From the sequence record OP123707.1: a DNA stretch of 64,000 nt. One strand, written 5' to 3'. Within the stretch, counting starts at the first letter, position 1. Each line of letters opens with the position of its first letter. The notes beneath the pieces are model-generated. The model had not been told where the DNA came from, did no database searches, and saw only the letters and a program-made list of their open reading frames with translations. The position numbers and the translations under genes are program-made. Positions 23,761 to 45,800 of this stretch are shown in pieces.

Positions 23761-24069
23761 TCAGCGGATTTAGGTTTGGGCGTAAGCTCCAACATGATTC
23801 AAGTTTATCTGAGTCTACAACTGATGGCACAGATTACAGGTCACCGTGCAATCGAGTCTTACCATAAGCTGGTGAACGTTCATTTGTACGAAAACCAAAT
23901 CGATTTGTTCCGTGGTGAAATGGAGCGCGAACCTTTGGAAGCACCGAAGCTATGGATTAACCCAGACATTAAAACACTGGAAGACGTTCGTACTTGGGTA
24001 ACACCAAAAGACTTCGCTTTGATCGATTACCAACATCACGACAAAATCGTGTATCCGTTCACGGTTTAA
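23761..24069 (+). CDS. thyA: Thymidylate synthase exon 2 (102 codons + stop)
   Basis: SADLGLGVSSNMIQVY...MAQITG...VHLYENQ...DFALIDYQHHDKIVYPFTV. The spliced product would be 302 aa. Confidence 0.92.
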   Translation, partial: SADLGLGVSSNMIQVYLSLQLMAQITGHRAIESYHKLVNVHLYENQIDLFRGEMEREPLEAPKLWINPDIKTLEDVRTWVTPKDFALIDYQHHDKIVYPFTV

Positions 24070-24134
24070 TAGATATGGGTAGGGCTGAGGCTCTACCTGT
24101 GCTTTTTTCTTTTTCAATATTTGAGGACAGAATT

Positions 24135-25522: not shown

Positions 25523-25571
25523 GTCTGTTTATTAACGGACTTTCATTTTCTAATCTTAAAGAGAGTTAATT

Positions 25572-26435
25572 ATGAACAAACACATTGTCGAAGTTATGCA
25601 TGAATTGGTGGACGCATATGTAAAGGTCACTGGGAAGAAACCTCACCAAGCAGTTCAAGAACTCAATAGCGGTTACTGTTATATGGTAGCGACGTTCGCC
25701 CAATACATCTTAAAAGAAGTTCATGAGATCGAAGTTAAATTGCTGGCGCACTGTCATCATTCTTTTATTGAATATGAAGGTAAATGGTACGACACTATTT
25801 ACCCAGTAGGTTATCCTTACCATCCCTCTAAAGTTTGGCGTTTAAAAGAAGCGCATTGCACGGAAGGAGTAATGGAGATGGAATATGGGGAATGTCGTTG
25901 TGTAAATCCATCTGCCGAGATGATTGTTTGGATGGAACACCTGTGTCGTTATCATGGGGTGGTAACTCCCCCTCTTTATGAGAAAGTCGTTGGACGTTTT
26001 TCAGGAGATGTTTGGGGTCCTGGATACACTAAGACCAAACACCGTCGCATACTGAACCGACTCCGCAGTCGTAGTTTGAAGTTTAAAGACACCGAACTGG
26101 AAGTCGTGGTGGTGGGATGGGTAGCGAACTTTCATGTCTATCCGGAAGATTTGTGGGTGGAATTAGAAGTCGTGGATTACAACACTTGGATGAGAAGTAT
26201 TATTAAAACCCGTTATCCTGATTACGAGGAAACAATGGAGAAGTGTTTTGGGAAAGAGATCTTTAGTCCAGATAAGAAATCTAATGATCGTACTGTGATG
26301 GTACAGAGTCCATACCTCAAAACCCCTGTCTCTGCTCCTCAAGCCATCACAGTAGTTGGGTGTGGAAAAACCTTTGCAGAGATCCAGCGTTCACCTCAAC
26401 AAAACGGACCGATTTGGTTTAAAGAAGAGAAATAA
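25572..26435 (+). CDS. Hypothetical protein with possible Cys-His-Asp triad
   Basis: 287 aa. LNSGYCYMVA...HSFIEYEGKWYD. Confidence 0.7.
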   Translation: MNKHIVEVMHELVDAYVKVTGKKPHQAVQELNSGYCYMVATFAQYILKEVHEIEVKLLAHCHHSFIEYEGKWYDTIYPVGYPYHPSKVWRLKEAHCTEGVMEMEYGECRCVNPSAEMIVWMEHLCRYHGVVTPPLYEKVVGRFSGDVWGPGYTKTKHRRILNRLRSRSLKFKDTELEVVVVGWVANFHVYPEDLWVELEVVDYNTWMRSIIKTRYPDYEETMEKCFGKEIFSPDKKSNDRTVMVQSPYLKTPVSAPQAITVVGCGKTFAEIQRSPQQNGPIWFKEEK

Positions 26436-26470
26436 CACGGGACATCGTATGTAAGTAAAGGAGAGTACGT

Positions 26471-26692
26471 ATGTCTAAGTTGGCTTTGGCTTTAAGTGTC
26501 ACAGCGGTGTTGTCAGGAACTTTAAGGACGACTGCCATTGATGACCTGGTTCAATGTATCCCGGTGGTCCCAGCGACCACCCTATTCACCAATCGCAAAC
26601 CCCCGTTCATAAAAACCTTACACACAACCGTAACGGGGAAAGGTAAGCGGGGGGTTGATCAATATTACTATTATGTCAGAAGGACGGTGTAA
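26471..26692 (+). CDS. Small hypothetical protein (73 aa)
   Basis: AAGGAG RBS. Its stop is 2 nt before the next ATG. Confidence 0.6.
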   Translation: MSKLALALSVTAVLSGTLRTTAIDDLVQCIPVVPATTLFTNRKPPFIKTLHTTVTGKGKRGVDQYYYYVRRTV

Positions 26693-26694
26693 TC

Positions 26695-27066
26695 ATGTTT
26701 AAAAATCAAAAATCAAAAATTTGGATCACTGGCTTAATCATCGTTTGTCTGTTTCAGTTCGCGTTGTTTCTTTTACCGAGCGAGCACAGTGCAGAAGGCG
26801 AAATCATTAACATCGTGGAATACAACCACAAGACCACCAAAATCAGTTTCCCTACCGTAGGGGAACCTGAGTTCATCACCCCTGAGGAACGTACATTTAT
26901 TCGTTACCGGCTAGACGTATTAATAGGGAACGTTGTTGTTGAGTGTATTCTTCGTACTGATGAATACGGATTACTCGGGACAAGCAACTACGTAACCATG
27001 ACGTATGAATTTATGGACAATGGTGAATACCGTTGTGTGAATTTAAAACCGGTGATGGAGGACTAA
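26695..27066 (+). CDS. Membrane-anchored beta-rich protein, paralogue 1
   Basis: Helix IWITGLIIVCLFQFALFLL followed by a beta-strand pattern with two Cys. Confidence 0.75.
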   Translation: MFKNQKSKIWITGLIIVCLFQFALFLLPSEHSAEGEIINIVEYNHKTTKISFPTVGEPEFITPEERTFIRYRLDVLIGNVVVECILRTDEYGLLGTSNYVTMTYEFMDNGEYRCVNLKPVMED

Positions 27067-27425
27067 TGAGAAAAGGTGTGGACTGGATTCCCTATGTCGT
27101 TGGGGTGGTGATTACTGTTGTGATGATTTCATTGACTGTTTGGTACGCCATCAGTTATCAGGTGTACATGACCCAAGGTCGTGTCACTCATGTATCAGAA
27201 AGAATCACAGGAGGGAGCAAGCTCTTATTCAACGGTAAAGCGATGTCTTCAGTCATCCAAAACAAACACCTCGTTTATGATTACTATATTCAGACGGAAG
27301 TTAAGATGTTTAAGTGTCGGGTCTCTGAAGAAGAACATTTAGAGATAGGGGACATGAAAGACCTCAGTGTGATTTACGGTCAATATCCGAGTGGGGAACA
27401 AAACTGCCTTTATGTGGGTATTTAA
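27066..27425 (+). CDS. Membrane-anchored beta-rich protein, paralogue 2
   Basis: TAATG overlap gives a start at 27066. Helix WIPYVVGVVITVVMISLTVWYAI and the same two-Cys pattern. Confidence 0.75.
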   Translation: MRKGVDWIPYVVGVVITVVMISLTVWYAISYQVYMTQGRVTHVSERITGGSKLLFNGKAMSSVIQNKHLVYDYYIQTEVKMFKCRVSEEEHLEIGDMKDLSVIYGQYPSGEQNCLYVGI

Positions 27426-27429
27426 ATTT

Positions 27430-27455
27430 AGTGGCGTTCCTACGGGAGCGTCACT
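27430..27455 (+). terminator. Terminator hairpin
   Basis: AGTGGCGTTCC-tacg-GGAGCGTCACT followed by T-rich sequence. Confidence 0.7.
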
Positions 27456-27465
27456 TATTCCCGCT

Positions 27466-27516
27466 TTCTTTATTTTTTTGACATACAGATATTTTTAAAC
27501 CTATATAACCAAGGTG
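27466..27516 (+). promoter_or_regulatory. Phage early-type promoter, copy 4, with 23-bp upstream element
   Basis: TTCTTTATTTTTTTGACATACAG + 12 nt + CTATATAACCAAGGTG. Confidence 0.7.
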
Positions 27517-27554
27517 TATAAACAACAATTTATTTAATCTCTTGGAGAATCATT

Positions 27555-27806
27555 ATGTCTAATACAACAACTGTAAACGAACTACGCATCGTTAAACTTG
27601 TCACTGGTATTGCACTAGCAGGCATCGCTTCTGTACAGGGTGAAGACTCTACTAAATCTGTAGTCTACATTGCAGCGGGTACTGCGGTATCTATCGTTCG
27701 TACTGATGAGTCTGACACTCGTTGGTCTAACGCTAAAAGTTCAGCTGCTTGGAATACCATTTGGAACATCTTTTTCGTAAGCATCATCGGCAACATTTTC
27801 GCTTAA
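27555..27806 (+). CDS. Small hypothetical protein (83 aa, hydrophobic segments)
   Basis: GGAG RBS. First gene after promoter copy 4. Confidence 0.75.
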   Translation: MSNTTTVNELRIVKLVTGIALAGIASVQGEDSTKSVVYIAAGTAVSIVRTDESDTRWSNAKSSAAWNTIWNIFFVSIIGNIFA

Positions 27807-27844
27807 TCTAATTTTTGTATTTAACCTTTATTGAGGAATTTATT

Positions 27845-28174
27845 ATGAAAGCACAATCTGCAATCATCAAAGAAGTCATGCCAATCAACTGGAAAGCATG
27901 CAAAGACGGGTCCCTAAAAGAGTTCGGTATTTTTAACAAAACGGATCCAGTATCTGGGAAACTTATCCTCCTAATGGTCGGTGATGAAAGAACTGATTCA
28001 GCTTTCACATTGGCAATCGGTGGGATGAAAAACGGTTGGGTAATCCGTGACCTAGCTCAACACGAAGCCTTGGGTGGGAGTTATAAAGATGGCCTGTTGG
28101 AAGAACTTGATGGATGTGACGCTACAACAGCGGTAACTAAATTCATCGAAATCTTAGAATCTAACAACCTTTAA
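27845..28174 (+). CDS. Hypothetical protein
   Basis: ATG 27845 follows GAGGAA, preferred over the TTG at 27815. Confidence 0.75.
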   Translation: MKAQSAIIKEVMPINWKACKDGSLKEFGIFNKTDPVSGKLILLMVGDERTDSAFTLAIGGMKNGWVIRDLAQHEALGGSYKDGLLEELDGCDATTAVTKFIEILESNNL

Positions 28175-28184
28175 GGAGTACGTC

Positions 28185-28586
28185 ATGGAAAACTTTATTT
28201 ACGATGGTATTAACTACATGGACGTGGTTAAAGCGACTTTTGGTGAACACACTTTTTATGTTAGTAAATGGGAAGTGGAAACCAAACAACTCGGTGAAGT
28301 AATCCAACTTACCGAAGAACGTCCGGTGGAGTTCAACACAGAACTTCATATTGAAATCAGAGCGACTGCGTACACAACTGTGTCTATTTACGTCACTGAT
28401 TCATTACAAGCTTTGGAGATTGCAAAAGAGCTCTCATCAGAACTTGATAAGGAAGTGGGTATTTATTCACACGCTCGTTACTTGGCATGGTTCGATAAAG
28501 GCGAACAAGTTGGTGAACTCCGTACGTTGGATGATTTCTATACGAACATCACCGATGAAGAACGTGCTTTGACTCGCTTAAAATAA
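28185..28586 (+). CDS. Hypothetical protein (133 aa)
   Basis: AAGGAG RBS. Acidic protein. Confidence 0.8.
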   Translation: MENFIYDGINYMDVVKATFGEHTFYVSKWEVETKQLGEVIQLTEERPVEFNTELHIEIRATAYTTVSIYVTDSLQALEIAKELSSELDKEVGIYSHARYLAWFDKGEQVGELRTLDDFYTNITDEERALTRLK

Positions 28587-28601
28587 ACAGAACGCAAAAA
28601 A

Positions 28602-28631
28602 CCTCCTACTACCCCTTGGGGTAGTAGGAGG
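28602..28631. terminator. Terminator between convergent early and tail genes
   Basis: 14-bp inverted repeat CCTCCTACTACCCC / GGGGTAGTAGGAGG, with an A-tract on the left (T-tract for the minus strand) and a T-tract further right. Confidence 0.85.
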
Positions 28632-28664
28632 ATAACTTTGCAGTTTATTTTTTTTTTCTATGGA

Positions 28665-29561
28665 TTAAACCATAGTGTTTTTGTTCTTAACAGTCTTCGC
28701 ACGGCTTTCCATTTGTTCCATGATACCAGTATCACGAAGTGAGTTCAGAACCGCCGTGCGATCTTTGAAGCCATCCGGGATGCTAGAACCGATGTTGTTG
28801 TACAGCGGCAATTTCTTCAGGAACGTACGTGCCACTTCACGTACCGCCAGAGTATCGAACTCAGTTAGGCCAGTGTATTCCATGTTGATCTCACGGATTT
28901 GACCAGCTTCTTCTTTGTTACGACGGATACCCACTTCCACAGTAGAACGTGGCATTACTGCCATCGTGATTGCCGCATGAGCGATATCACGCATGTTCTC
29001 AGTGGTGTTGAACATCAGTAGTGTAGCTGAACGTTCGTCGATCAATAGATCGCCTGGTTGACTCAGTACCACAGCACGAGGTGCTGCTAGATCCACATCG
29101 TGACCCAACCATTTAACCCAGATAGAGTGTAAGTTAGTGAACGGTTCGCCAACTACATCATTACCTTGGAATGAGATCGGACCTAGGGTACGAGTACCGC
29201 CAGTCGGAACGCTTAACGTACGACCAGACCAACGAACGTCACCGAACTCAAGTTCTGTACGATCAGTTGGACCTTGCCATGTACGTGCACGGGTTTCAAA
29301 CCATGCTTTCGCTAGAGCGTGCAGGTAGTTACCCGCAGGCAGACGACTGAAGAGTGAAGGAGTGGACATCACGAAACACCAACCTTGTTGGTCGATGTGT
29401 GGATGTTCGTTTACGTAAAGGTAAGAGTCCGGTGCGAAACCGTACTGACCACCTTGCGTGCCGTCTAACGTCGGACGTACGCCTTTATCAGTGTTAGTGA
29501 AGAAGGCTGAAGAGTTAGACAGTAACGTCTTATTACCGCGGTGCGGTTGGTTAGAAGACAT
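28665..29561 (-). CDS. Tail tube protein (phiKZ gp30-like)
   Basis: 298 aa, immediately downstream of the sheath gene. Size and position match the family; no diagnostic motif is claimed. Confidence 0.7.
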   Translation of the reverse strand: MSSNQPHRGNKTLLSNSSAFFTNTDKGVRPTLDGTQGGQYGFAPDSYLYVNEHPHIDQQGWCFVMSTPSLFSRLPAGNYLHALAKAWFETRARTWQGPTDRTELEFGDVRWSGRTLSVPTGGTRTLGPISFQGNDVVGEPFTNLHSIWVKWLGHDVDLAAPRAVVLSQPGDLLIDERSATLLMFNTTENMRDIAHAAITMAVMPRSTVEVGIRRNKEEAGQIREINMEYTGLTEFDTLAVREVARTFLKKLPLYNNIGSSIPDGFKDRTAVLNSLRDTGIMEQMESRAKTVKNKNTMV

Positions 29562-31843: not shown

Positions 31844-32722
31844 ATGTTTTCTAATGCTTACGACACTTACGTCGGTAAACCATTAGCGCACCTAGATCAC
31901 GTCCCATCTACTCTTAAACGTTTATCTGTGACAAAAGACCTAAGTGAACTTGGTGATGGCGTACTGCGCTTGGACCACGCTAGCGGTCAAGGTATCCCTT
32001 TCCTTAATTTCCCTCTGTCCATGATTGGTTACAACCGCAAGCCGATCACCGTAATGGACGACCGCCCTTACACCAATAAGTCCGGTGTTATCACGAACGC
32101 TGCTGAACGCATTGCCTTATTGGTTACGTCTTTTGTACAACAAGATGTGATCGATGGTAACATGGCAGTCATCCGTAGTACCACGGCAACCGTTGCACGT
32201 GCTCTAGCCCGTTCTTGGGGTTCTCAAATCATTCGCCAGTCTGGTTTGGAAGAAGAGAAAGCGTTGACGGTTTACATCACGCTGATTCACTACTACAACT
32301 GTTTGGTGAACGATAACGTCGGTGACATGGTTTTCACTTCTCAAAACTTATGCCAACAAGTGATGGGAATCGATCGCAAACGTAGCTTAGAAGTCTTAGA
32401 ACAACTGGGTTACATCAATACTCTTCCTAAACTACACGAAGCCCTAGTGAACTACCCAGGCATGTACAAACTGAAAAACATGCAAGTGAAAGACCTGATT
32501 GCTTTGGGTCAACGCATTTGGTATTCCGCAACCGGTAAACAAATCGTGGGTGCGGGGTTAGAACACGCTCCTTTATTAGTGGGTATGTGTGCGGCGACGA
32601 TTGCTAATAAAAACGCTTACGGCAAAACTCCACTCGGGATGCAACTGGATCCTAAGTATAACGAGAAAAACAACCGAGCGTTGGTGATGACCATCACGAA
32701 CTCCTACCCTATCATTCTTTAA
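31844..32722 (+). CDS. Conserved virion structural protein (phiKZ gp28-like by synteny)
   Basis: 292 aa, GGAG RBS, first gene divergent from the sheath. Confidence 0.6.
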   Translation: MFSNAYDTYVGKPLAHLDHVPSTLKRLSVTKDLSELGDGVLRLDHASGQGIPFLNFPLSMIGYNRKPITVMDDRPYTNKSGVITNAAERIALLVTSFVQQDVIDGNMAVIRSTTATVARALARSWGSQIIRQSGLEEEKALTVYITLIHYYNCLVNDNVGDMVFTSQNLCQQVMGIDRKRSLEVLEQLGYINTLPKLHEALVNYPGMYKLKNMQVKDLIALGQRIWYSATGKQIVGAGLEHAPLLVGMCAATIANKNAYGKTPLGMQLDPKYNEKNNRALVMTITNSYPIIL

Positions 32723-32753: not shown

Positions 32754-35333
32754 ATGTTAGTCGATAATTATCGCACCCCTTTAGCGCGTTACGCCATTAA
32801 GGACATGTATTCCAACCCGGGGACCAGTCGTCAGTTTCAATTGCAGCTGACACAGGTCTCCCCGGACGTGGGGTACATCAACACGTTCCAGTTCATGGGA
32901 CGCTACCGCAAAACTCCGCTTGAACAAGATTACTTTATGATTTACAACATGTCTGGCTTTGATGGCTCGACATGGAACTTTCATGAATTGTTCACTCGCA
33001 TGGATCCGGTAGACCAATGGATTAACGTTGCGAAGATTTGTAAACAACGAGGCATGATCATCGACATCTACGGAGACGATGGTCGTCTGTACCCTCGAGA
33101 CAAATGTTGGGTCATGTCTACTTATGACGGTCAACAGTTACTGTCTGTACAAAAGCTGCGAGCATTCAAACAAACCTGGAAGGAAGCACGTTACCTTCAC
33201 TGCTACACAATCCAGACGCAAGTCTACGACCCTAACAACAACACACAAATAGACTGGCCTCGTTTCAGTTCCAACAACGGCACCAGTGCGGAAGAAAAAG
33301 ACCGCATGAAAATTACGTACGCCGATTACCTGAAACTCCCGGGATTAACCTCGGTGTATTTGAACGGGTATTTGTGGGATGGGTTTCCTAGCGATGACTT
33401 GTTGCTCGGCACAGAGGTGATCGAAATCACTAACGACCCGAGCGTATGGAAAGTGGAAACTTATGATGTGGGTTCTTTGCCAAACTTCCAATCGGAGCGA
33501 GACCAAACCCGTAAGTTAATCATCCACCCTCCTAAAGGTGATTCGGATTTCAAATACCATTATGTTTCGGATGTCTCATTCTACGTGGTAAACAGTCAAG
33601 GACGTGGGTCGTATCTCAACCGTAACGATCCCGCACACTTCCGTCAATTAACTCATCGCGATTACGCAGTGAGCGCAGGACTGGTCGATGATAAAGGCAA
33701 CATGAACGATCTGTTGCAAAACGACCGTCATCATTTGCGTCTGGTGTACCGTAAGAACGATTACGCTCAAGAGATTCCTTACGAGTCCAATGGTGTACGT
33801 TGGTTGTACCGCATGACAGATGAAAACATCGTCGGGGCTTTGATAGGCATTAACTCCACCATGAAAGAATGGTTAGCCATCAATCTAGAACAATCCCCAA
33901 CCAACGAGTTCTTGACCATCGATTACAAAGACATCACTCACAACCTAGCGGTAGAAGCCGTGGGGTATAATGCAGCAACGCAGGTGTTGTGTGGTTCTCC
34001 GTTTACGTACGATCCAAGTACTGGGATGGAATTAGAAGTTCCTCCAGCGTGCCGTAATGATCTGACAATGATGGAGTACGATGCCGATGGTTTATTCCTT
34101 CGGATGCGTTATTTGAGTCGTGTCAACTTTGTTAAACCTACTAATGATTGTGGATTGGTGGAGTTCTTCCCAGGTCGTCCGGGATCTCGAATTCATTCTG
34201 AAGCGAGTCGTGGGTTAATGTACGTGGATAAAAACGTCACCCCGAGACTGTATGTTCAAACGGTCAGCACTGAAGGAGAATTTGTTGGGGAACGCCGTGT
34301 CGCGGTAGAAGGGACGGATTATCTCTTTGATCGTGAGAAAGGGGAAATCCAGTGGACGCTGCAATCGAAGATGTTCGTTGGGTTAGCGCTGTTTAATGAC
34401 CGTACGTTGTACAAAGAGTTCACGTTAGACCACATCGATAATTCATTGAGTTTCAGTGTGACTCATGAATGGGCGAAAGGGGGATTGTTAACCGATGTCG
34501 CTCCGGCGAACATCATGGTCATCATGAACCGTCACTCTTTGATTGAGAACGTGGATTACGTGGTAGACTTCCCAGACATTCACATTCTGAACCACCAGTA
34601 TTTAAAATCCGGCGGGAATGATTTTGTCCTTTATTGCAGTGAATGGTCACCGATCGACGATAACACGCCTCTAGAGCAATCTGAGCTGGGTTACGTGAAC
34701 GGTGGGGTGATTGGTCATAACACGAAGTACAACCTCCGAGAAGACCGTGTGACGCGCACTACACTAGGTGGTCGAGTTTGGGATCCAGCTCAAGTTCCGG
34801 TGGCGGAGTTACATCCACCAAGTGAAGTGCTGAACCCATACAACGGTCAACCTTATGGTGTAAAACACTGGTACATTCCAATTCGAGATTGGGTACCTTA
34901 CGACATGACCCACGGTTGGGAAGCGGCTCGAGATCGAGATCGTCGCATGAGTCAATATCTGACGTTGTTTGCGAAGAAACCGACTCCGGAAGTCATTCCA
35001 TCTTTGATGGACAAATACCGTGTCTTCAGTCCGTTCATGAATGCTGTGGTCAACCAAATCTTACTAGGGTTATTGGAGCTGGATGATTTACCCGAAGGGG
35101 AATCTTACTCCAAAGACTATGTATTGCGTAAAACAGCAGATTACCAATGGATGTTGAAATTCGATCCAGTGTTACTGGGTTATGACATTCGTTACTTTGC
35201 CGTGTTCCCATACGTTCAACAAACCATGGTGGTGGTTGAACCGAAGGAGCTCACTTTCATAAGACGTGTTAATGCTGTGCTTTTAGAAAACCGCATTAAC
35301 GTCAATGGACACTTTGAGGTTAAAAATGTTTGA
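32754..35333 (+). CDS. Conserved virion structural protein (phiKZ gp27-like by synteny; probable baseplate)
   Basis: 859 aa, GAGGGG RBS. Begins with the WC/YSNP.QD.Q-like segment YSNPGTSRQF. Confidence 0.6.
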   Translation: MLVDNYRTPLARYAIKDMYSNPGTSRQFQLQLTQVSPDVGYINTFQFMGRYRKTPLEQDYFMIYNMSGFDGSTWNFHELFTRMDPVDQWINVAKICKQRGMIIDIYGDDGRLYPRDKCWVMSTYDGQQLLSVQKLRAFKQTWKEARYLHCYTIQTQVYDPNNNTQIDWPRFSSNNGTSAEEKDRMKITYADYLKLPGLTSVYLNGYLWDGFPSDDLLLGTEVIEITNDPSVWKVETYDVGSLPNFQSERDQTRKLIIHPPKGDSDFKYHYVSDVSFYVVNSQGRGSYLNRNDPAHFRQLTHRDYAVSAGLVDDKGNMNDLLQNDRHHLRLVYRKNDYAQEIPYESNGVRWLYRMTDENIVGALIGINSTMKEWLAINLEQSPTNEFLTIDYKDITHNLAVEAVGYNAATQVLCGSPFTYDPSTGMELEVPPACRNDLTMMEYDADGLFLRMRYLSRVNFVKPTNDCGLVEFFPGRPGSRIHSEASRGLMYVDKNVTPRLYVQTVSTEGEFVGERRVAVEGTDYLFDREKGEIQWTLQSKMFVGLALFNDRTLYKEFTLDHIDNSLSFSVTHEWAKGGLLTDVAPANIMVIMNRHSLIENVDYVVDFPDIHILNHQYLKSGGNDFVLYCSEWSPIDDNTPLEQSELGYVNGGVIGHNTKYNLREDRVTRTTLGGRVWDPAQVPVAELHPPSEVLNPYNGQPYGVKHWYIPIRDWVPYDMTHGWEAARDRDRRMSQYLTLFAKKPTPEVIPSLMDKYRVFSPFMNAVVNQILLGLLELDDLPEGESYSKDYVLRKTADYQWMLKFDPVLLGYDIRYFAVFPYVQQTMVVVEPKELTFIRRVNAVLLENRINVNGHFEVKNV

Positions 35334-38300
35334 GAAAACTTTAACTAGTCCGGAGACTCAAGCCGTTATTCCGGGAGCTGGTCCTCAGCTCCCTAATGAT
35401 AATGAGGCGAGTCGCATTCACTATATCTGGGACATCTACAACCCAGATACAGTTAAGTCGGGCGAAGAAAGTCGTTATCGTGTACCAAAAGAGAAAGAAG
35501 TGGTCGTTGACCCTGTTGCTCAACAATGGTACATCGTAACGCACGTTAACTGGGAAGGGGACTTACGTTCAACGTTAGAACCTATCTTTGTTACCGGTGG
35601 CGAAGGGGACGTGGATCCACTGAACTCCATCTTTGGCTTGCCTGCGGGTTACCAAGGGGAAGCGATCGTGGGTATCGATTACTCGGTTCGTCCTAACCGC
35701 GCGGTCATTGACGGTCAAGTAATGGCTCCGGGTGCCGCTTACGGCTTGCTGTATGAAGGTAATACCGTTGGTGAGAACGGCAAAGTGATTTCGGTTCTTT
35801 ACGGTAGTAACGGTGAGATGATCTCTAACCGCATTCCTACGGAACTGGCTGCGCACCACGATTTGACCAACAAAGAGATCATGGTTACTCAACCATTCTC
35901 GGTTAACCGTAATGCGGAAGAGTTGCCTGATGGTAGTCGTTGTACGTTGGTGTGGTTTGACCATACTGGAAACATGATACCAAAAGCGCGTTCACTATCG
36001 GTTCAACACACGTCGTTGTTGCGTGACCACCAAGTGGGTAAACGCTACATCCGTAAAGTGGAATTGATCGCGCCATGGTTCTTGTCGTCTGCGGATCCTA
36101 AGACCCTGCACATCCCAGTTAACACTGTGTTGCAGAACTTGTCGTTCCGTGCGGTGGTTCACTACAGTGATGGTTCAAAATCGGAAGAGTTACCGATTGA
36201 TGGTCAGAAGGTTATTTTGTACGGCCTGAATGAGCACAAACCGTCGACTCCAAGTCAACGTGGTACTTTGACTCTGGTTTACAACCTTGACCGCGATGAA
36301 CACATCTACGAAGCACAAGCAGGTAACCCGAACCAATACCGTGATTCATACTCGCTGTTAGCGGTTGAGTTCGATGGTGCTTACTCACCGAAGCTTTACT
36401 CGTACCCAACTTGGGTCAATGGTCAGTACTTGTTGAAACACTACCTGACCGACTTAGATCGTTCGTTCATTATTGATGCAACCGATCACGTTCGTATTAA
36501 CGAGTTGTCTCCAGCCTTCCGTCCTACGACATACGGCGTGGAACAAACGTTAGAACTGAACCTGCGTTTAAGTGACGTGGTTCCTACGTTCGAACCAATG
36601 ATCATGCGTCAGTCCACCACGTTTATTTTGAAAACCCCAGGTACTGAAGATGGTAGTAAGTTTGATGTTCGTTATTCTTACGATCAGCGCGCTTACAATG
36701 ATCCTACTTTCCGTGCGGTCAACCAAGCGGACGGTCGTCAACAGATTGAATTTGGTGGGGGTTTCGAAACCCAAGAAGAATGGTTGGATGAACTGTATCA
36801 TGCAGTGGAGCCTGCCTACAACACCCGACGTGAACGCGGGCCGATGGCACCGACTCACTTTGAAGTTGAAGCAAGTTCTGGTAAGGTCTACAGTTTTGAA
36901 CTGTCTCAGTGGGATGAGAAAATCTACTTGGATACGCAAGAGCCTCAAGCCCGTACGATCTTCGTACGCTGGGTGCACGAAACGATCCAAGGCGAGAAAC
37001 TGCTGCTGGCCACCACAGGTATCTCCATCGACGTGGTTGAAGGTCCGAGCACAGAAACACCAGAACCTACTTCTATCGAATTTGACTCTTCAATGGTCAC
37101 TGAAATAGGCGAAGGTGAAGTGTTTGAGGTTTCCGGTGTGGTTTATGACCAAAACGGTAAACCAATGAAGGATGGTTTAACAACCCTTCTTGTACGTGGT
37201 GGCGTGTTCCACGCTGTAGCTCCACGTAAGATCGAAGTGAAGATCGACGGTTCATTCCGCTTCTACACTTGGTCTGAGAAAGCAGTGGGTGAAACACAAA
37301 CCCTTGAATTTGCTTTCGAAACCGGTAAAGCCCCTGTTTACTTTACCACAAGAGACATTGACATCGTCGAGAACGATTTCGAAGTCGTTAACGAGTTTTA
37401 CCCTTACTCTCCTACAAAAGTGAGTGTCAACAAACCAGCGCGTGCGTTCGGTTACATGACGGATGGAGATGGCAACCGTTTGACGGATTACCAATTCTAC
37501 TCATTGGTGGGTGATGACCTTGACTCCATTAAAGTCGAATCAACTGACGATAACGGTGACTTCCTATTAAGCCGTTTCCACGGTGGAAGTGAATCGCTTG
37601 CAATCATTAACGTGAAAGCAGGTGGTACTGATGACGTTCGTACGTTGAGTTGGATTGAAGGGGAATCTTACGGTGACCGTATCACGATTGACCAACTAGA
37701 TTGGACTTACGTGGGCACAGAACAAATGGCATTGACCGGTCGCGTCTACGATCAGTTTGGTGACTTGGTTTCTGACGTGTCAACTACTGTAGGTTTCGGT
37801 CCTCAATGGAATCCGGCGAGCGTAACTAAGACGGGTCTTCAAGGTTCGTACGTGTTGAACCACGCTTACATGGAACCGGGTGATGCTTATGACATCGTTG
37901 TGTGGACAGACAATGATTTCGTCTTCGCTACTGTAACGTGGGAAGAAGAAGTAGTAGTTGCCGACCGCATCGTGATGGACAGCACTAACCCAGATGAAGC
38001 GCCGGCAGGCACTACGGTTCGTATCACTGGTAAGTTGGTGGATCTTGACGGTAACGACTTTGTAAGCGACAGTCAAACTCCAATTACGGTTACTCGTTTG
38101 GGTAGCGGTGAGAACAACCTGATTTACGCAGGTTTGGATGGTAAGTTTGAATACGAAGTGGGTCCGTTCAATGACTGGGAAGTTACAACGTTCTTGTTCG
38201 AATTGGCGGGCAAACCTCCGGTTACGCACACTGTCACCTGGATGGGTGAACCAGCGAAGCTGAATACCTTGAAGTTTGATACTGGTCTGGCAACAGAAAC

Positions 38301-41300
38301 CAAAGTGGGTCTACCAATCACTCTAATGGGTGATGCGATTGACCAACACGGTAAGTTGTTTGCCCCGGGTGTACCGTTTGAATTTGAAGTGGAGTATGCT
38401 GGTAAGACTGGCATGGCGTCATCACCGGGTGATGGTCGCTGGAGTTACTCAGCGAATAATGACACTGAAGGCGATGTACTGTTTACCTTCAAGTCAGACA
38501 CTCGTGTAGTGGGTACTTACACCATCAAGTTCGCAGGTGAGATCTTCATTCGCCCTCTACCAAACGTAGACATGGAGTACCGTATTCCAACGGGTGAGTC
38601 AATGACGGTTGGTTGGTACGTTGTGGATGAAAACAACGACATTGTTGTAGGTCAACGAGTTGACATCAAACAAACGCTGCCGATTGAAAACAACTTGGGT
38701 TACGGTATCACCGACAAGTATGGTAAGTTTGAATACACGGTTCCTTATTACCCAGCGGGCTTCGGAGAAATCTACGGTTACGCGGGTGTGAAAGAAGCAC
38801 CAATCACATTGGCTTGGAGAGATGAAGAAGACATTGGTTTCACTATCTCGTCATTCAGTGCTCCACAATACGTTTACAATGGCGTGACTGCGTTAGTGCG
38901 TGCGATCGTTCGTAACGAAAATGGGGAGGCGCTTGACACTGGTCGATTGATGTGTTACAGCCGTGACACGTACACCTTAGTGGATCTGATTCCTTACGAC
39001 GCAAACAACATGCCGGAAGGTAACGTTGAGTTGAACGGATGGAACGGTAACCTACTGGATGGTGAACAAGCATACTGGGTTGGCCCATTACCGGAAGGCA
39101 AGCACGACTTGGTGTTCTTCACTGAGAGTGAGACCAAGCTATGGCCGATGACATGGCGTGTGTACGATAAAGAGCTGTCTCGTATCGAACTAGCGGAAGA
39201 CACAGCAACAAAAGCACTGACCCCAACTGATGCGCCTACGGTTTACATCAGAGGTACAGGTATCGCAGGAGATGAGTCGGTCTTCCTACCATCAACTCCG
39301 AAACCAGTAACATGGGAAGGCAGTGACGGCACTAGTGGTAATACGGTAGTGAACGTAGACGGTAGTGTGGGTTACTACATTACTAATGTTGCAGGCCCAG
39401 GTACAGTGGTGTACACCATTAAAGATGGTGCGCGTATTCTGGCAACGTTCGAAATCGAATACATCAATGGTACTCTAACGGAACTACCTTACTCTCAAAC
39501 CATGCGTTTGACGGGTGAATCGGCTATCGTAGCTTGGGGTGTCCGTGATGAGAATGATCAAGCCGTAGAAGGTCTGACCTTGCTGAAAGCAATTAACCCA
39601 GTGGAAAATGAAATCTACACGAACGGTATTACCGATGAGTGGGGTATCATGGAGCTGGTGTTGGATAGCACAGACGCAATCCCAGGTTCAACTAAGGTAA
39701 CGGTCAACTTTGATCCAGAAAACCCAACAGTAGCACTGATCAACACAACCACAACACTAGGCGGCGACGCTGATATTGTTGAAATGACGGCAGGTACGGC
39801 TTACGTTCGTGCGGAAGCTGAACCAAGAAGTCAAACTGTGTCTTGGTTCGAACCAGGTACAACGGATCCATTGATGGCTAACGTCACCGATGTAACGTTT
39901 GCATCTGAACCAGGTTATGGCCTAGGTGAAGTGAAACTCTTCACTGGTGTTGAAGGGGTAAGTGGTGTAACACAACCAACAGCGAACTTTGTGATCTTCG
40001 ATAAAGGTTCGTTCGATTACGTGGATTGTGGTACAACATCTGAAGAAGGTGAACGTCCTCCTTACTACGATTTCCAAGGCGATGGTTCTTTGGAAGCGGA
40101 TATTCGCGGCGGTGCATCGTGGGATGGTACTCGTCATCTGTTGTTCGCAACGGGTTACGACATCCACGAAGAAACTGTTGAGTGGGTAGGGGAAGAGAAA
40201 CCAGTAGCAGGTCTAGCAGTACTGCCTTACTCTAACGTTGCACAGGTTACACAAAACGAGGGCTTCGTTGCCATCGGTGCAATGACAGAAGAAGGTGAAG
40301 GTGTTCCAAACATTCCAGTGACTATGAGTCTAGGTGCCCAAGGTGCTCAAACTCAAACGGTGTTGACGGATGAATTTGGTATCGCTGAGTTCACATTACC
40401 AAGCAATGACGGACAAGGTACAGATTGGACTGGTCCAACTGACATCTTTGTGTCGTACGCTCACCACACTACGGACTGGAACATCGCTTGGGGTGCTTCG
40501 GCAGCTATGGCGACAACGCAAGTTCGTTGGTCAGATCACACCGAAACAGTAGGTGCTGGCTCTGAGGGTGTTATTGCAGCGGTAATGATGGGTGTGAACA
40601 ACACAGTTATCAATGCTCCTCAGTTGATGGCGTTCAACAAGACCACCATGAATCTTGTTCCTGTAACACCGCATAATAACCTTCAGAACATGTTCTACGG
40701 TCACATCGAAGCGCAGCCTGAAGGGGTTAATGCATTCGTGTTCTCTACACCATACACGCACTTCGAAAGAACTCTGACGTGGGTTGCGGAACCAGCGAAA
40801 GATTGGGATGGCATCGATTGGGTAATTGCGAACGACTCTCCTGAGGTTGTATCAACGTTTGCAACAAACTTCATTGATGGTAAACTGTTGTCTTGGACTG
40901 CGGAAACTGGTGAACAACCAATGCGCATCATGGGTCCTGTAACGGTGGATTACCGTCGTTCAGATGGTTCTGGTGCAGGTACGGCTTACGCTCTACCTGA
41001 TGGTACTGTGTCTATCCCTGTGGGTAGTCCGACAGAACTCGAAGAGATCTGGAGCTTCACAGATAACGACCGTGAGGTCGCAAGTAAGACTGTTAAGTTT
41101 ATTGACGGCGCAACCGTTGACTTTACAGGCTACAGCCATAGCGATGCGGTAACAGGCACAAGTGCGCATGTATCGGCGTTTGTGAAAGATGCAGAGGGTA
41201 ACGGTGTTCCTAACGCAACCATCGTGTTCGCACTAAGCAACTTCAGTAACGTACCATTCGCGAAAGTTAAGACCGACCAGTTCGGTATTGCGGAAGCGGC

Positions 41301-42771
41301 ATTGGCATGGGACGAGTTGTTGTACGGCGGCAACCCAGTGGTGACGTTCGGTCCAAGTACAGAAACGAAAGTGGTCACTTGGTCTGATGTGAACGACATC
41401 GTACAGTTCCCAGCGAACTTCGGTCTACTGAACTTTGCTACTCAAGCGGAACTTCCTAACCAGCTAACTGTGAACGGTACTATCCTGACGCAGAACGGCA
41501 ACCAAGGTGGAGATTACGGTTACGTTAAAGTGTTCTCGAAAGAGACCTTAACCACCGTTGATCTAAGCGCGGGCATGACAACTGATGGTTCATTCAACAG
41601 CAGTTACGGTCCTTTCTTGGAAGGCGGTAACACCGTCGTGTTCGCTGTGAACGGTTACCACCAAGTTGAAGAAGTGGTTTGGAACGAGAAGCCTATGGAA
41701 CTGGCTGAACTACGAGTGACTCCGTTCATCTCTAGTTTCGCTAAGACCGGTAGCACAATGACTGTGACAGGTAACGCATTCCAGGCGAGTGGTGAAGCCT
41801 TCACTCCAGACTCTGCGGTAACGTTTGATGCAATCAACGTCGCTACGGATGAAGTGGTGAAAGGTACGATCAACCCAGATGGTACTTGGACCGTTGATGT
41901 GGGTAGCGCAGTAGAAGGTGAAGTAACATACACGTTCACGGAAGAGAACGATGAATGGACAACCTTCGGTGACTTCGTAATGACTTGGTACGCAAATGCG
42001 ACCTTCCGTCCTGCGGCGTACACGACTGAACGCACCCACCTAGGAAGTACGGCTTACGTAGCGTATGTATTCCAAGACCAGAATGGTAACCCTATAGTAG
42101 GAGAAACATTTGCAGCGGCAGTTGACAACCAAGTTGACGAAGAAGTAGCCAATGCAGTGGCGGTAACCAACGAGTTTGGTATTGCTACGTTTGACGTTCC
42201 TTACGTACAGGGTCGTAACCAAATCGAAGTCTACGGTGAGTTCGGTGGTATCGGTCACTTTGATTCCATCGATTGGGTTAGCGAAAGCATCCATGTGGGT
42301 ACTGAGTTTACTCAAGTGGTTCACCCAGAAGTCATTGGAGTTGGTGATACGTTCCGCATTACTGGTTCGGTGTTGGATACCCAAGGTAACCCAACAACAG
42401 TCAGCGATGTTGGTATCTTTGACCTACAATCTCTAGATTGGGTGGAAGCGCAAGCAACCACTGGTGGTAATTTCGTGGTTGAGTACACTCCTCAGGGTGA
42501 AGGTCCGCAGTACATCGCACTTTACACTGAAGCGTACTTCCAGATGTTCGAGTACACCACTGATGGCGAGTTCGTGAAGATCGACCAAGTGAACGTGTTG
42601 GATGGTTCTAACAAATATATCCTAATCGACGGTGCCGCGGTTCTACCGAAGCCTGAAGAGTTGGTTATTGAGTTGAGTCCAGACAACCCTCAGTATGTAT
42701 TGGTTGAAGCCCCAGTCGTGATCACTACTTCAACAGACCCGGATAGCCCAGATACCATTCTGGTAGAATAA
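35326..42771 (+). CDS. phiKZ gp26-like virion protein (first ~570 aa) fused to a long chain of Ig-like (Big-type) repeats
   Basis: ATG 35326 follows GAGG. Linker GPSTETPEP at about 37041-37070. After it, ~90-100-aa acidic beta-rich units recur with motifs D..G.P, TD..G.A/F, DG.W/F and a terminal V.W. Confidence 0.75.
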   Translation: MFEKTLTSPETQAVIPGAGPQLPNDNEASRIHYIWDIYNPDTVKSGEESRYRVPKEKEVVVDPVAQQWYIVTHVNWEGDLRSTLEPIFVTGGEGDVDPLNSIFGLPAGYQGEAIVGIDYSVRPNRAVIDGQVMAPGAAYGLLYEGNTVGENGKVISVLYGSNGEMISNRIPTELAAHHDLTNKEIMVTQPFSVNRNAEELPDGSRCTLVWFDHTGNMIPKARSLSVQHTSLLRDHQVGKRYIRKVELIAPWFLSSADPKTLHIPVNTVLQNLSFRAVVHYSDGSKSEELPIDGQKVILYGLNEHKPSTPSQRGTLTLVYNLDRDEHIYEAQAGNPNQYRDSYSLLAVEFDGAYSPKLYSYPTWVNGQYLLKHYLTDLDRSFIIDATDHVRINELSPAFRPTTYGVEQTLELNLRLSDVVPTFEPMIMRQSTTFILKTPGTEDGSKFDVRYSYDQRAYNDPTFRAVNQADGRQQIEFGGGFETQEEWLDELYHAVEPAYNTRRERGPMAPTHFEVEASSGKVYSFELSQWDEKIYLDTQEPQARTIFVRWVHETIQGEKLLLATTGISIDVVEGPSTETPEPTSIEFDSSMVTEIGEGEVFEVSGVVYDQNGKPMKDGLTTLLVRGGVFHAVAPRKIEVKIDGSFRFYTWSEKAVGETQTLEFAFETGKAPVYFTTRDIDIVENDFEVVNEFYPYSPTKVSVNKPARAFGYMTDGDGNRLTDYQFYSLVGDDLDSIKVESTDDNGDFLLSRFHGGSESLAIINVKAGGTDDVRTLSWIEGESYGDRITIDQLDWTYVGTEQMALTGRVYDQFGDLVSDVSTTVGFGPQWNPASVTKTGLQGSYVLNHAYMEPGDAYDIVVWTDNDFVFATVTWEEEVVVADRIVMDSTNPDEAPAGTTVRITGKLVDLDGNDFVSDSQTPITVTRLGSGENNLIYAGLDGKFEYEVGPFNDWEVTTFLFELAGKPPVTHTVTWMGEPAKLNTLKFDTGLATETKVGLPITLMGDAIDQHGKLFAPGVPFEFEVEYAGKTGMASSPGDGRWSYSANNDTEGDVLFTFKSDTRVVGTYTIKFAGEIFIRPLPNVDMEYRIPTGESMTVGWYVVDENNDIVVGQRVDIKQTLPIENNLGYGITDKYGKFEYTVPYYPAGFGEIYGYAGVKEAPITLAWRDEEDIGFTISSFSAPQYVYNGVTALVRAIVRNENGEALDTGRLMCYSRDTYTLVDLIPYDANNMPEGNVELNGWNGNLLDGEQAYWVGPLPEGKHDLVFFTESETKLWPMTWRVYDKELSRIELAEDTATKALTPTDAPTVYIRGTGIAGDESVFLPSTPKPVTWEGSDGTSGNTVVNVDGSVGYYITNVAGPGTVVYTIKDGARILATFEIEYINGTLTELPYSQTMRLTGESAIVAWGVRDENDQAVEGLTLLKAINPVENEIYTNGITDEWGIMELVLDSTDAIPGSTKVTVNFDPENPTVALINTTTTLGGDADIVEMTAGTAYVRAEAEPRSQTVSWFEPGTTDPLMANVTDVTFASEPGYGLGEVKLFTGVEGVSGVTQPTANFVIFDKGSFDYVDCGTTSEEGERPPYYDFQGDGSLEADIRGGASWDGTRHLLFATGYDIHEETVEWVGEEKPVAGLAVLPYSNVAQVTQNEGFVAIGAMTEEGEGVPNIPVTMSLGAQGAQTQTVLTDEFGIAEFTLPSNDGQGTDWTGPTDIFVSYAHHTTDWNIAWGASAAMATTQVRWSDHTETVGAGSEGVIAAVMMGVNNTVINAPQLMAFNKTTMNLVPVTPHNNLQNMFYGHIEAQPEGVNAFVFSTPYTHFERTLTWVAEPAKDWDGIDWVIANDSPEVVSTFATNFIDGKLLSWTAETGEQPMRIMGPVTVDYRRSDGSGAGTAYALPDGTVSIPVGSPTELEEIWSFTDNDREVASKTVKFIDGATVDFTGYSHSDAVTGTSAHVSAFVKDAEGNGVPNATIVFALSNFSNVPFAKVKTDQFGIAEAALAWDELLYGGNPVVTFGPSTETKVVTWSDVNDIVQFPANFGLLNFATQAELPNQLTVNGTILTQNGNQGGDYGYVKVFSKETLTTVDLSAGMTTDGSFNSSYGPFLEGGNTVVFAVNGYHQVEEVVWNEKPMELAELRVTPFISSFAKTGSTMTVTGNAFQASGEAFTPDSAVTFDAINVATDEVVKGTINPDGTWTVDVGSAVEGEVTYTFTEENDEWTTFGDFVMTWYANATFRPAAYTTERTHLGSTAYVAYVFQDQNGNPIVGETFAAAVDNQVDEEVANAVAVTNEFGIATFDVPYVQGRNQIEVYGEFGGIGHFDSIDWVSESIHVGTEFTQVVHPEVIGVGDTFRITGSVLDTQGNPTTVSDVGIFDLQSLDWVEAQATTGGNFVVEYTPQGEGPQYIALYTEAYFQMFEYTTDGEFVKIDQVNVLDGSNKYILIDGAAVLPKPEELVIELSPDNPQYVLVEAPVVITTSTDPDSPDTILVE

Positions 42772-42811: not shown

Positions 42812-42837
42812 ATGAAGGGGAGGCAACTCCCCTTCAT
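42812..42837 (+). terminator. Terminator
   Basis: ATGAAGGGGAG-gcaa-CTCCCCTTCAT followed by a T-tract. Confidence 0.85.
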
Positions 42838-42896
42838 CCTTTTTCTTTCAATAAAGTAAACAGCAAATTTAATTAACCTAATTAATGGAGTTAACA

Positions 42897-45800
42897 ATGA
42901 TTGGGATTATTAAGGGTAATATACTGGATGCCGATGGTGTACCCATCAATCCCGGCAAACCAGTAACCATCACAGGTAAACGTAGTGACGGTGGCGATGA
43001 CATCACACTCGTAACCGAGAATGATGGTACGTGGACCTTTGACATCTCCTCCACTGAAATTGGTGAATGTATGATTACGTTCATGTACGGTGGTTTGCAA
43101 GTCGGTCAATACGGCGTCTGGTTCGTGGACGATGTCAATCTGCAAGTCCTTCCTTATTCTAGCAAAACAACCCATCAAGGTCGTGGTGCACTAGTTGCGT
43201 GGGCGGTTACCGATGTTGAAGGTAACGGCATCCCGAATGCTCCACTCACTATTTACGATAACGGCACGGACCCGGCTCCGATTGCAGTTGTCACCACTGA
43301 TGAATTTGGTATCGCTGAATTATCGGTTCCGGCAACCAATGGCCAAGGTGAAGAAACAGTTGGGTTCCGTCGCTTCCACGGTACTATCGGGAAACAAATG
43401 TCCAGCCACGCAGTGGAATGGATTACGACTGACGATCAAATCGCGTATGTCTTTGATGACGTTAAATACACCGCAGAAGTTGAAGCAGGTGGTAGTGCGG
43501 TTATTTCAGCTCGTCTATTAGACCAAAACAATGTGATGGTCGACGCCCCTACGTTTGGTGTGTTTAACAAAAACACTTTAGAAGTTACCACAGGTGGTGC
43601 TTACATGACGGCTGATGGTTTAATCGTCAGCACACCAGCAGATCAGGGTCAGGGCGTAAGTACACTTTACCTTTACTCTGAGAACGCTCGTCATGAGATG
43701 ACCGTGGAATGGCAAGATCAGTTATCTGAAGCAGTTGCGAGCATTGAACTTGTTGCACCAGATGCAGTTGTGTTCCCAACGGGTGATGACGGCACGGTAA
43801 TGCACGGTACTGCGCTCAACGCAGCGGGTGACCCAGTAACGATTCGTAACGAAGTGAAATTCGACACGAAGTCTGATGGAGTGAATGACGGTTTTGGTTT
43901 AGTACTGGCTGATGCCTCCTTTGCTATTTTGATGCAAGCCTTTACAGCCACAACTAAAACTCGTGAGATCGCTCTTAATGGCACCACACTCTTTAATAAA
44001 GAGTATGAGTATCGTAATGGTTTAACCATTGCTAAATGTGAGTACGGCAATGACGAAATCCCAACTGGAGCTGATGGTTTCGTTGCTTTCGCTATCACTG
44101 ACGGTGATGGTGAGATCGTACATGGTGCTGCGGTCACTTACACAAAGAGTAACGGGCAGCGTTATTACACAAACAGTCCTTTGGATGGCAATGGTCTTCT
44201 TGAAATCCCAGTGTCTCAAGATGGCAACGAAGGTCGTACGTACGAAGAAGTGCGCGCAACGATTGGTGACGTAACCGCGGTCTCCGGTGCCTACTGGCGT
44301 CCATCGAACATTTCAGTCGGTACCACACTTCAGGACATCGTGTTCCCAACATCGTCTAAGGATGATGAAGTTATCCGTATCATGGGTACACTGAATGACC
44401 AGAATGGCGTAGGTGTATCTAACGTTAAGTTGGGTATGTTCAACGTTTCTACGTTGGGTTACGAAGAGTTTGGCCTAGATGGTGCTATTCAGCTAGACGG
44501 TAGTTTCGAGTTTGACTACGGTCCATTAGGGGTCGGTGAACACGAATTGATTCTGGCTACTAACGCCGCAGTAGAACGTCGTGACACGGTATGGACGTCA
44601 AGTATCCCTGCGTTCGATACATTGGTGGCGGAAAGCTACGGTACCGACATTAGTGAACCAGGCGCTACTGATATGCTTCCGGTAGCCGCTATTGACGTCG
44701 ATGGTAAGGGTGTTCCAGGCGTTCCGGTGACGCTCTACAAGTCTGATGTGAACAGCACTCAAGGTGAAGAGATCACTACGGTTACTACTGATGAGTTCGG
44801 TGTTGCTGAATTCATTTTGACTCCACCGATTACAGATTCGACAGTAGACGGTACAGAATACTACTTGGCGAAAGTGCGCGATAAAACAGTTCGCACCCAG
44901 ATCTATCGTCATCCAACTCGACCAGCCGCTGGTGGGTTTGTTAATGTGGCGTTCCCTTCAGTTGCCCCAGTGGGCAGCCGTCTCTTAGTATCTGCTGATT
45001 TAGTGGGCACCGATGGCGAACCAGCACTAGTCGGTGGGACATTTACTGTTTGGAGTAAGACTTCACGTCAACATATTCATGCCTGGAACAATACCTACGG
45101 AAACACTGTGACATTGAGTATCGCTCCATTGCCGGAAGGTTCTCACACATTGGTACTTGGTCTTGGGGGCAGCACAGCTTGGCACGAATTTGAAGTTAAC
45201 GTTTCTAGTGCCGTTAGCGAAACACTTCCAGCAAGCATTGTTATTGATCCGTTATCACCAACAATTGGTGGTGTGGGGCAAGACGTACCTATCATTGGTC
45301 GCGCTCTGGATGGAGCAGGTGATCCTTACATCCCTAACTCAGCTATTCAGATTCAAGCGAGAGATGAAGCTAAGTCGTATTACGGTTATGCACACATCGA
45401 AGCGGACGGTACCTTCACCATTCTTTACGAATTGCAAGCGCTGGGCGATACATCATTGTTCATCGAAGAATCGAATGTTGAAACCTCATTGGGTAACTGG
45501 GCATTAACAGCCCGCGATGACCTAACACTATCGGTATCGGAATCGACTACAGAGCGTCCAGCTCACGGTGATCCAGCAACGATCATTGGTCGTGTTGTAG
45601 ATTCAACAGGTGATCCGGTAGAAGGTGCTTGGTTGGAATACACAGATTCTTACGATGTCCTGGGCTCTGGTGCCACTGATGTGAATGGTTACTTGGTTTC
45701 TGAAGTTCCTTTCCGTCACAAGTACGCAAGCTTCGACTTCCAAGCGAAGATGGGCGACTTAACATCAGGTGTAGACGTTAGTCTTGCTTGGGCTCCAGAA

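Follow-up and report, generated by a model that had tools for sequence, protein, structure and literature searches.

Immunoglobulin (Ig)-like domains of the Big_1, Big_2 and I-set types are carried by several phage structural proteins, among them T4 Hoc, lambda gpV (in its C-terminal domain) and T5 pb6, and Ig-like additions to such proteins are a known theme. In these cases one to four accessory beta-sandwiches, presumed to serve weak adhesion, are joined C-terminally to a core virion protein, usually of the capsid or the tail tube. The present study concerns a gene on the plus strand (positions 35326-42771) of a 64,000-nucleotide stretch of DNA from Vibrio phage phiKT1028 (record OP123707.1); the whole stretch is referred to below as the window. 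The product of this gene is almost certainly an orthologue of phiKZ gp26 with a chain of 18 Ig-like domains that is specific to its clade. It resembles the known cases in the C-terminal placing of the sandwiches, but differs in that 18 of them are attached to a homologue of a baseplate-rim protein and that five more genes of Ig-like chains follow. To our knowledge, no core baseplate-rim protein with a fused chain of 18 such domains has previously been described. The labels of these proteins in GenBank-type records are merely 'hypothetical' or 'virion structural', and no description of gp26-Ig proteins was found in the literature on Aphrodite1, Gorgonvirinae, pVa-21, pVa-22 and BONAISHI.

The closest described relative of the N-terminal part is gp26 of phiKZ, which was located in the outer peripheral baseplate by a cryo-electron microscopy atlas published in 2026 (PMC13250141). 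The phiKZ baseplate has six star lobes, each containing five gp26, two gp27, five gp139 dimers, gp127 and two gp130, with a gp157 ring as a brace (PMC13250141). The framework of the star lobe is gp27, to which the gp26 N-termini bind in pairs, and gp26 acts as a flexible cross-linker whose C-termini lie at the periphery (PMC13250141). As there are five copies per lobe, a phiKZ virion contains 30 copies of gp26. Chimalliviruses have also been proposed to recognise their hosts by means of a cloud of filaments anchored in the peripheral baseplate (PMC13742148).

The gp26-like anchor and its neighbourhood

Phage phiKT1028 (Tidunavirus, Gorgonvirinae) is a nucleus-forming, phiKZ-like jumbo phage infecting Vibrio parahaemolyticus (PMC10587174). 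The genome is 239 kb in length, and the 7.4-kb gene stretch is 100% identical to positions 159326-166771 of OP123707.1. A single open reading frame (ORF) on the plus strand spans 35305-42771. Residue numbers given here count from the upstream ATG at 35305, and the actual protein corresponds to residues 8-2488. The start at 35326, which a preliminary description made from the same letters had chosen, was retained as the correct one because the orthologues begin there with the same initial residues, because GAGG is present 7 nt upstream, and because the start overlaps the stop of the preceding gene by 8 nt. The features concerned are as follows.

35326-42771, plus strand: whole gene, gp26-like anchor and Ig-like chain (2,481 aa; UVD32227.1; GenBank label 'hypothetical protein')
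35326-37038, plus strand: anchor, full-length homologue of phiKZ gp26, aa 8-578 (PHROG 3430; PDB 9xqd)
32754-35333, plus strand: upstream gp27-like gene (DUF7193; Pfam PF23823, E 0)

The same description had assigned the N-terminal 570 aa or so to the position of the gp26 gene, and this was borne out by both sequence and synteny. In a profile search, residues 26-575 matched positions 7-550 of the 554 positions of PHROG 3430 (E 7e-143). A cut-out query matched PHIKZ026 (PDB 9xqd, 552 aa) with its residues 38-556 (approximately 45-563 in ORF numbering), so that 519 aa were aligned on chain residues 21-538 (E 8e-58). The tail tube and sheath genes lie on the minus strand and the gp28-like (Pfam PhiKZ_VTX), gp27-like and gp26-like genes on the plus strand, and this divergent order is shared by Miami, PS1, FishSpeaker and a metagenomic contig. 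The gene adjoining the sheath (31844-32722) matched PhiKZ_VTX, the family of the capsid vertex-binding protein gp28, though it is situated among tail and baseplate genes.

Searches of the phiKT1028 GenBank record detected homologues of further phiKZ baseplate parts, namely gp157 (E 7e-33), gp139 (E 4e-25) and gp130 (E 2e-8), as well as fibre genes with a gp131-type N-terminal domain (E 8e-9). The gp139 match (OP123707.1 57555-58397, outside the window) spans one TGA, which may be the end of the ORF. As the star-lobe partners and the gp131-type fibres are both present, the rim and the canonical fibres have been kept, and the Ig chain is an add-on. A replacement of the canonical fibres by the Ig chain was considered and rejected on account of the gp131-type fibre genes.

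The likeness to phiKZ gp26 thus includes full-length homology of the first 570 residues or so, the gene order, and the presence of the partners gp27, gp139, gp157 and gp130. The difference is that phiKZ gp26, at 552 aa, ends where a linker begins in the phiKT1028 protein, which continues for a further 1,900 residues; the position and copy number in the phiKT1028 virion are inferred. The possibility that the anchor is a multi-copy tail or baseplate component, raised in the preliminary description, agrees with the five gp26 copies per star lobe in phiKZ (PMC13250141). If the phiKT1028 anchor occupies the baseplate rim as in phiKZ, approximately 30 copies would be present per virion. A projection of the chain from the rim is regarded as rather probable.

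Architecture and fold of the extension

In an alignment of 26 sequences, the short orthologues stop 0-8 aa beyond the last conserved strand (approximately aa 578 in the phiKT1028 protein), and the extension begins exactly at this natural C-terminus of the gp26 family. The extension of approximately 1,900 aa is composed of a linker, 18 full domains (D1-D9 and D11-D19), a single fragment of 34-44 aa after D9, and a 68-aa tail. It has an isoelectric point of 4.1 and a net charge of -184. The domains close with a strand whose last residue is W, F or Y, and are connected by short junctions. The Pro/Thr/Glu linker and the acidic nature of the units had both been recognised beforehand; the earlier count of 18-20 units stood in so far as there are approximately 18 full domains, and was refined to 18 plus the fragment. 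The parts of the extension, with the evidence for the domain assignments, are listed below, the classes a, b and c being those defined further on.

37039-37074, plus strand: aa 579-590, containing the Pro/Thr/Glu linker GPSTETPEPTS (aa 580-590) in the translation; 93% identical in the closest relatives
37075-37941, plus strand: D1-D3, aa 591-879; D1 and D3 class-a-like, D2 class-c-like (hhalign, D1-D19 90%, D1-D3 77%; D2 against the class-c hidden Markov model (HMM), E 1.7e-15)
37942-38817, plus strand: module 1, D4 (a), D5 (b) and D6 (c), aa 880-1171 (hhalign; VIA for D4 and D6)
38818-39744, plus strand: module 2, D7 (a), D8 (b) and D9 (c), aa 1172-1480 (hhalign, D7-D13 93%, D5-D8 69%; D9 against the class-c profile 99.9%)
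39745-39846, plus strand: aa 1481-1514, a 34-aa fragment rather than a full domain, separating D9 from D11 (no significant match to the class profiles)
39847-40494, plus strand: irregular module 3, D11 (a) and D12 (c) with no class b, aa 1515-1730 (D11 against class a 84.5%, E 7e-6; D12-D15 95%)
40495-41382, plus strand: module 4, D13 (a), D14 (b) and D15 (c), aa 1731-2026 (hhalign; D15 matched Big_1 with 42.3 bits, cut-off 34.9)
41383-42276, plus strand: module 5, D16 (a), D17 (b) and D18 (c), aa 2027-2324 (AlphaFold2 (AF2) model, predicted local distance difference test (pLDDT) 80-92; Foldseek E 4e-13)
42277-42564, plus strand: D19 (a), last folded domain, aa 2325-2420 (AF2; hhalign, D1-D19 90%, D4-D19 78%)
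42565-42768, plus strand: C-terminal tail, predicted to be disordered, aa 2421-2488, with a hairpin-like motif at aa 2428-2447 (pLDDT approximately 30)

The Ig-like character of the repeats, for which domain-wise AlphaFold and Foldseek analyses had been suggested as a check, was upheld by three lines of evidence. Firstly, D15 alone exceeded the gathering cut-off of Pfam Big_1; nothing significant was obtained with Pfam for the separate pieces D1-D3, D7-D8, the D9 insert to D11, D13-D14 and D19 with the tail. Secondly, the AF2 model of aa 576-1530, built from four sequences, was all-beta with a mean pLDDT of 46, and was usable only for D4 (pLDDT 70-80) and D6. When these two were aligned by VIA to macroglobulin domains, Z scores of 10.2-10.5 were obtained with a root-mean-square deviation (rmsd) of 2.1-2.6 Å. 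D4 was also aligned to intimin D00-D0 (Z 9.1-9.2) and to domains of the invasin InvE, SbsC and filamin, the overall range being Z 9-10.5 and rmsd 2.1-2.9 Å over approximately 90 residues. Thirdly, the AF2 model of aa 2027-2488 (mean pLDDT 76) contained four sandwiches, D16-D19, and retrieved with Foldseek the macroglobulin-domain arrays of complement C3/C5, alpha-2-macroglobulin and TEP1 as best matches, as well as titin and an RTX adhesin. In a library of viral structures, the same model matched orthologues and paralogues from vibriophages and then other phage Ig arrays. In these models, six domains (D4, D6 and D16-D19) are Ig/macroglobulin/Big_1-like sandwiches, in agreement with a fold of seven to eight strands and approximately 95-100 aa, and most of the others can be tied to the Ig-like fold through hhalign and HMM profile comparison.

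The extension has the domain fold, the tandem rod arrangement and one Big_1 match in common with the invasin/intimin proteins and the macroglobulin arrays. It differs from them in a low sequence identity (approximately 10-18%), in having no beta-barrel anchor, C-type-lectin tip or thioester domain, and in that most units fall below the Pfam thresholds. A Pfam scan of the whole protein gave only Big_1 and no DUF7941, although the presence of the DUF7941 model in the Pfam copy used was unconfirmed; the sequence was fully accounted for by the gp26 domain and the Ig-like units.

No repeats were found when the whole protein was compared with itself by BLASTP, and they were detected only by HMM and profile methods (fragment and iterated HMM searches, and hhalign). 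Classes were assigned by an all-against-all hhalign comparison in which the profile of each domain was built from three Tidunavirus-type sequences. Class a comprised D1, D4, D7, D13, D16 and D19, class b comprised D5, D8, D14 and D17, and class c comprised D6, D9, D12, D15 and D18. Among D4-D19, all of the pairs with a probability above 50% (14 of 14) were spaced by multiples of three domains, for which the expected proportion was 29%. With pooled class profiles, D11 was assigned to class a (84.5%) and D9 proved to be a complete class-c domain (99.9%), so that the third module consists of the fragment, an a domain and a c domain. This period-three arrangement points to growth of the chain by tandem duplication of an a-b-c module.

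A cycle of three unit types had already been perceived in the preliminary description, and apart from the irregular third module it was recovered by hhalign. The sequence motifs by which the types had been told apart fared less evenly. A TD..G.A-like motif is characteristic of class c, in which 7 sites fit when the pattern is loosened, and DG.W/F occurs at 6 sites in classes a and b, whereas D..G..G.H.L had no match.

Length and conservation among gp26 orthologues

The gp26 anchor domain was present in 289 phage records. The possibility that all orthologues are equally long had been raised beforehand and did not hold, as most are of 552-601 aa and a few chimalliviruses outside the clade have approximately 100-300 aa more; the lengths obtained were as follows.

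phiKZ, Miami, PS1 and FishSpeaker: 552, 571, 579 and 577 aa, respectively
Short-range word search: 565-601 aa in 22 of 26 gp26 clusters
Three other lineages, anchor 37-45% identical: 704 aa; 771 aa (two Big_1); 868 aa (three Big_1)
phiKT1019 and Aphrodite1: 1,587 and 1,588 aa, respectively
pTD1 and VP4B: 2,486 and 2,483 aa, respectively

Anchor-bearing proteins of 1,368-4,354 aa formed nine clusters in the word searches (which covered gp26 lengths below approximately 1,000 aa and above approximately 1,370 aa), and all nine were from Vibrio or Photobacterium phages. On the evidence of these sequences, the long gp26 form is restricted to Vibrio/Photobacterium chimalliviruses. Beyond the anchor, the Aphroditevirus-like proteins carry approximately 10 domains and those of Tidunavirus approximately 18.

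The 130-aa extension of the 704-aa protein had no Pfam match. The 868-aa protein, encoded by a metagenomic chimallivirus contig (JACCDR010903929.1, 7310-9916), carries three canonical Big_1 domains together with a linker rich in Ser, Asn and Asp. Its gene has the same synteny as that of phiKT1028, and directly next to it lies a homologue of the ORF at 61882 of the window, which we take to be the terminase. Because this homologue directly follows gp26 in the metagenomic relative, the Ig block of phiKT1028 looks like a clade-specific insertion. The independent, small additions of Big_1 at the same gp26 C-terminus in two other lineages suggest that this end is tolerant of added domains.

Within the vibriophages, the shorter, Aphroditevirus-type form is colinear as far as D9, where it stops, so that the Tidunavirus form is longer by approximately nine domains. 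These keep to the a-b-c order, and module duplication is the simplest explanation for them. Identity to the two closest relatives was 88% in the anchor, 62-79% in D1-D11, 56% in D12 and 30-59% in D13-D19, and DNA similarity detectable by megablast covered only the first 58% of the gene. As judged from these identities, the gradient resembles that of tail-fibre genes, in which the attachment end is conserved and the distal end is variable.

These data also bear on the proposal that the Ig chain is a structural strut, lying within or around the baseplate or along the tail as a reinforcement or spacer. The cross-linking role of phiKZ gp26 would be in keeping with such a part, as would the short domain junctions, which suggest a fairly stiff rod, and the fact that macroglobulin-like arrays often pack together. 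A built-in part should be conserved, yet the number of domains ranges from 0 to 18 among related phages with the same baseplate parts, and the distal half is only 30-40% identical; the strong negative charge of the extension also argues against compact packing. A strut is regarded as improbable, and a chain projecting from the baseplate rim remains the preferred reading.

The C-terminal tail, the downstream genes and the putative role of the chain

The gene is followed by a terminator-like hairpin and by paralogous genes for further Ig chains.

42812-42847, plus strand: strong terminator-like hairpin (stem of 11 bp, T run) directly past the stop codon
42897-61793, plus strand: five downstream paralogous Ig-chain genes, with starts at 42897, 47958, 53083, 55504 and 58227 (Pfam Big_1, Invasin_D3, MG4 and CarboxypepD_reg)

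Six consecutive genes in 37039-61793 are almost wholly composed of Ig-like, Big_1 or macroglobulin-like sequence, amounting to approximately 8,000 aa in approximately 24.7 kb, or approximately 10% of the genome, and this block is placed between the gp26 anchor and the ORF at 61882. For two very large ORFs upstream (2-5638 on the minus strand, >1,879 aa; 7270-11622 on the plus strand, 1,450 aa), Pfam gave no family at a threshold of E 0.001.

D19 belongs to class a, and by the a-b-c cycle a class-b domain would be expected next to it; the 68-aa tail, for which disorder is predicted, is present there instead. The last 66 residues of the protein had a pLDDT of approximately 30 and no secondary structure in the AF2 model. 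The 20-aa tail motif (aa 2428-2447) was 62% identical, whereas the remaining stretches of this length, over approximately the last 350 residues, reached 15-45%, and the same hairpin-like motif also terminates the Aphroditevirus-type proteins. No such tail was found in the gp26 proteins with Big_1 domains from lineages that lack downstream Ig genes, and in the phiKT1028 genome the tail occurs in one copy.

The N-termini of all five downstream proteins matched class b in hhalign (97.4%, E 1e-11) from profile position 28 to position 102 of 102. As they begin at position 28, the first strands of the domain are missing from them. The first downstream protein is colinear with the second half of D14 to D19 (E 1e-25), and its truncated N-terminal domain (42897-43124) is its best conserved part, with an identity of 72% compared with 40% overall in pTD1, and 45% compared with approximately 25% in Aphrodite1. 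Across the two phage genera, this truncated class-b domain is the most conserved part of the downstream Ig-chain proteins. A sequencing error which split the gene from the next one was rejected as an explanation, since the arrangement is conserved in pTD1, VP4B, phiKT1019 and Aphrodite1.

Taken together, these observations might indicate that the protein is the trunk of a composite fibre and serves mainly to carry the five downstream Ig-chain proteins. In such a fibre, the conserved disordered tail would supply the missing first strands of the downstream class-b domains by donor-strand docking in a split Ig domain. Each baseplate-anchored trunk would then be capped by one of the five distal chains, a proposal that is compatible with an adhesive role of the chain and extends it. 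The replacement of the predicted class-b domain by the tail, the colinearity of the next ORF with the end of the trunk, the common start of the five downstream ORFs at position 28, the strong conservation of the truncated domain and of the tail motif (the latter shared with the Aphroditevirus-type C-termini), and the absence of the tail where downstream Ig genes are absent would all be in agreement with it. A comparable docking of a disordered segment, head-to-tail on the globular domain of a neighbour, has been proposed for the assembly of the Goslar DUF7941 filaments of gp22/gp23 (PMC13742148). Those filaments are non-covalent polymers, whereas the phiKT1028 chain is one covalent polypeptide made from another building block, and its anchor is gp26 itself. 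Against the composite fibre, when the tail was compared with the three class profiles by hhalign, its alignment to class-b positions 2-35 was not significant (E 0.12), and the conserved motif on its own had no significant match to any of the three. There is also one tail for five candidate acceptors, and an old gene split could have left both the truncated first domain and the tail behind as scars. On balance, a composite fibre is considered possible but rather unlikely.

The tails differ among close relatives: in pTD1 (24500-24787) and VP4B, the protein next to gp26-Ig ends in a tail of its own, of approximately 60 aa with two similar strand-loop-strand motifs, whereas its phiKT1028 counterpart ends flush with the last domain. 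In the Aphroditevirus type, a single gene for an Ig-chain protein of approximately 3,520 aa lies 10 nt past the shorter gp26-Ig gene (Aphrodite1 18799-29388; phiKT1019 18796-29364). The last 70 residues or so of that protein resemble its own N-terminal domain.

Under the preferred reading, that of a chain projecting from the baseplate rim, each copy of the protein would extend a strongly acidic filament of approximately 70-80 nm, a length which assumes 18 domains of approximately 4 nm each. The filaments would act as accessory adhesins that bind weakly, reversibly and multivalently to the polysaccharide of the host surface or to other polymers near the host. In this way, the capture radius would be enlarged ahead of the commitment to infection by the baseplate and the retained phiKZ-type fibres, and the binding target would be set by the fast-evolving distal domains.

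Another possibility is that the target is the environment and not the host, and that the Ig-like domains retain phages on mucus, chitin or marine particles, as has been proposed for T4 Hoc. Ig-like decorations of phages are reportedly associated with weak glycan binding (Fraser et al. 2006; Barr et al. 2013), the hosts inhabit animal surfaces and particles, and the tip of the chain gave no sign of a specific receptor-binding domain. For host contact, the rim of the baseplate next to the fibres is a more suitable site than the capsid would be, and the tail-fibre-like gradient of identity points to selection by variable host surfaces. Adherence to the environment in place of the host is held to be highly improbable.

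Several points weigh against the projecting, host-directed filament. In phiKZ, several of the gp26 C-termini insert into the gp157 ring, into another gp26 and into the gp130/gp139 interface (PMC13250141). That a chain of 1,900 aa can leave from those sites is an assumption, and so is the presence of the long form at all five positions per lobe. For D1-D3, D5 and D7-D15, the Ig-like assignment was based on predicted strands and relations between profiles, and not on confident models. At the tip, neither a carbohydrate-binding nor a catalytic domain was detected, and the chain ends in the disordered tail. Finally, virion proteomics, imaging or adsorption data for the protein of any member of the clade were not found in the literature.

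The orthologues with 0, 2-3, approximately 10 and 18 domains form a natural length series in which the contribution of the filament could be assessed. As phiKT1028 and its relatives are under development against shrimp-pathogenic Vibrio, determinants of adsorption and host range would be of use. The vibriophage clade appears to reach a filament cloud like that proposed in 2026 for Goslar by a second route, that of covalent fusion. If the composite fibre proved to be true, each virion would carry approximately 30 trunks with interchangeable tips that differ in specificity, which would be a new way to build mixed long fibres from one anchor and might account for the broad host range that phiKT1028 is reported to have.

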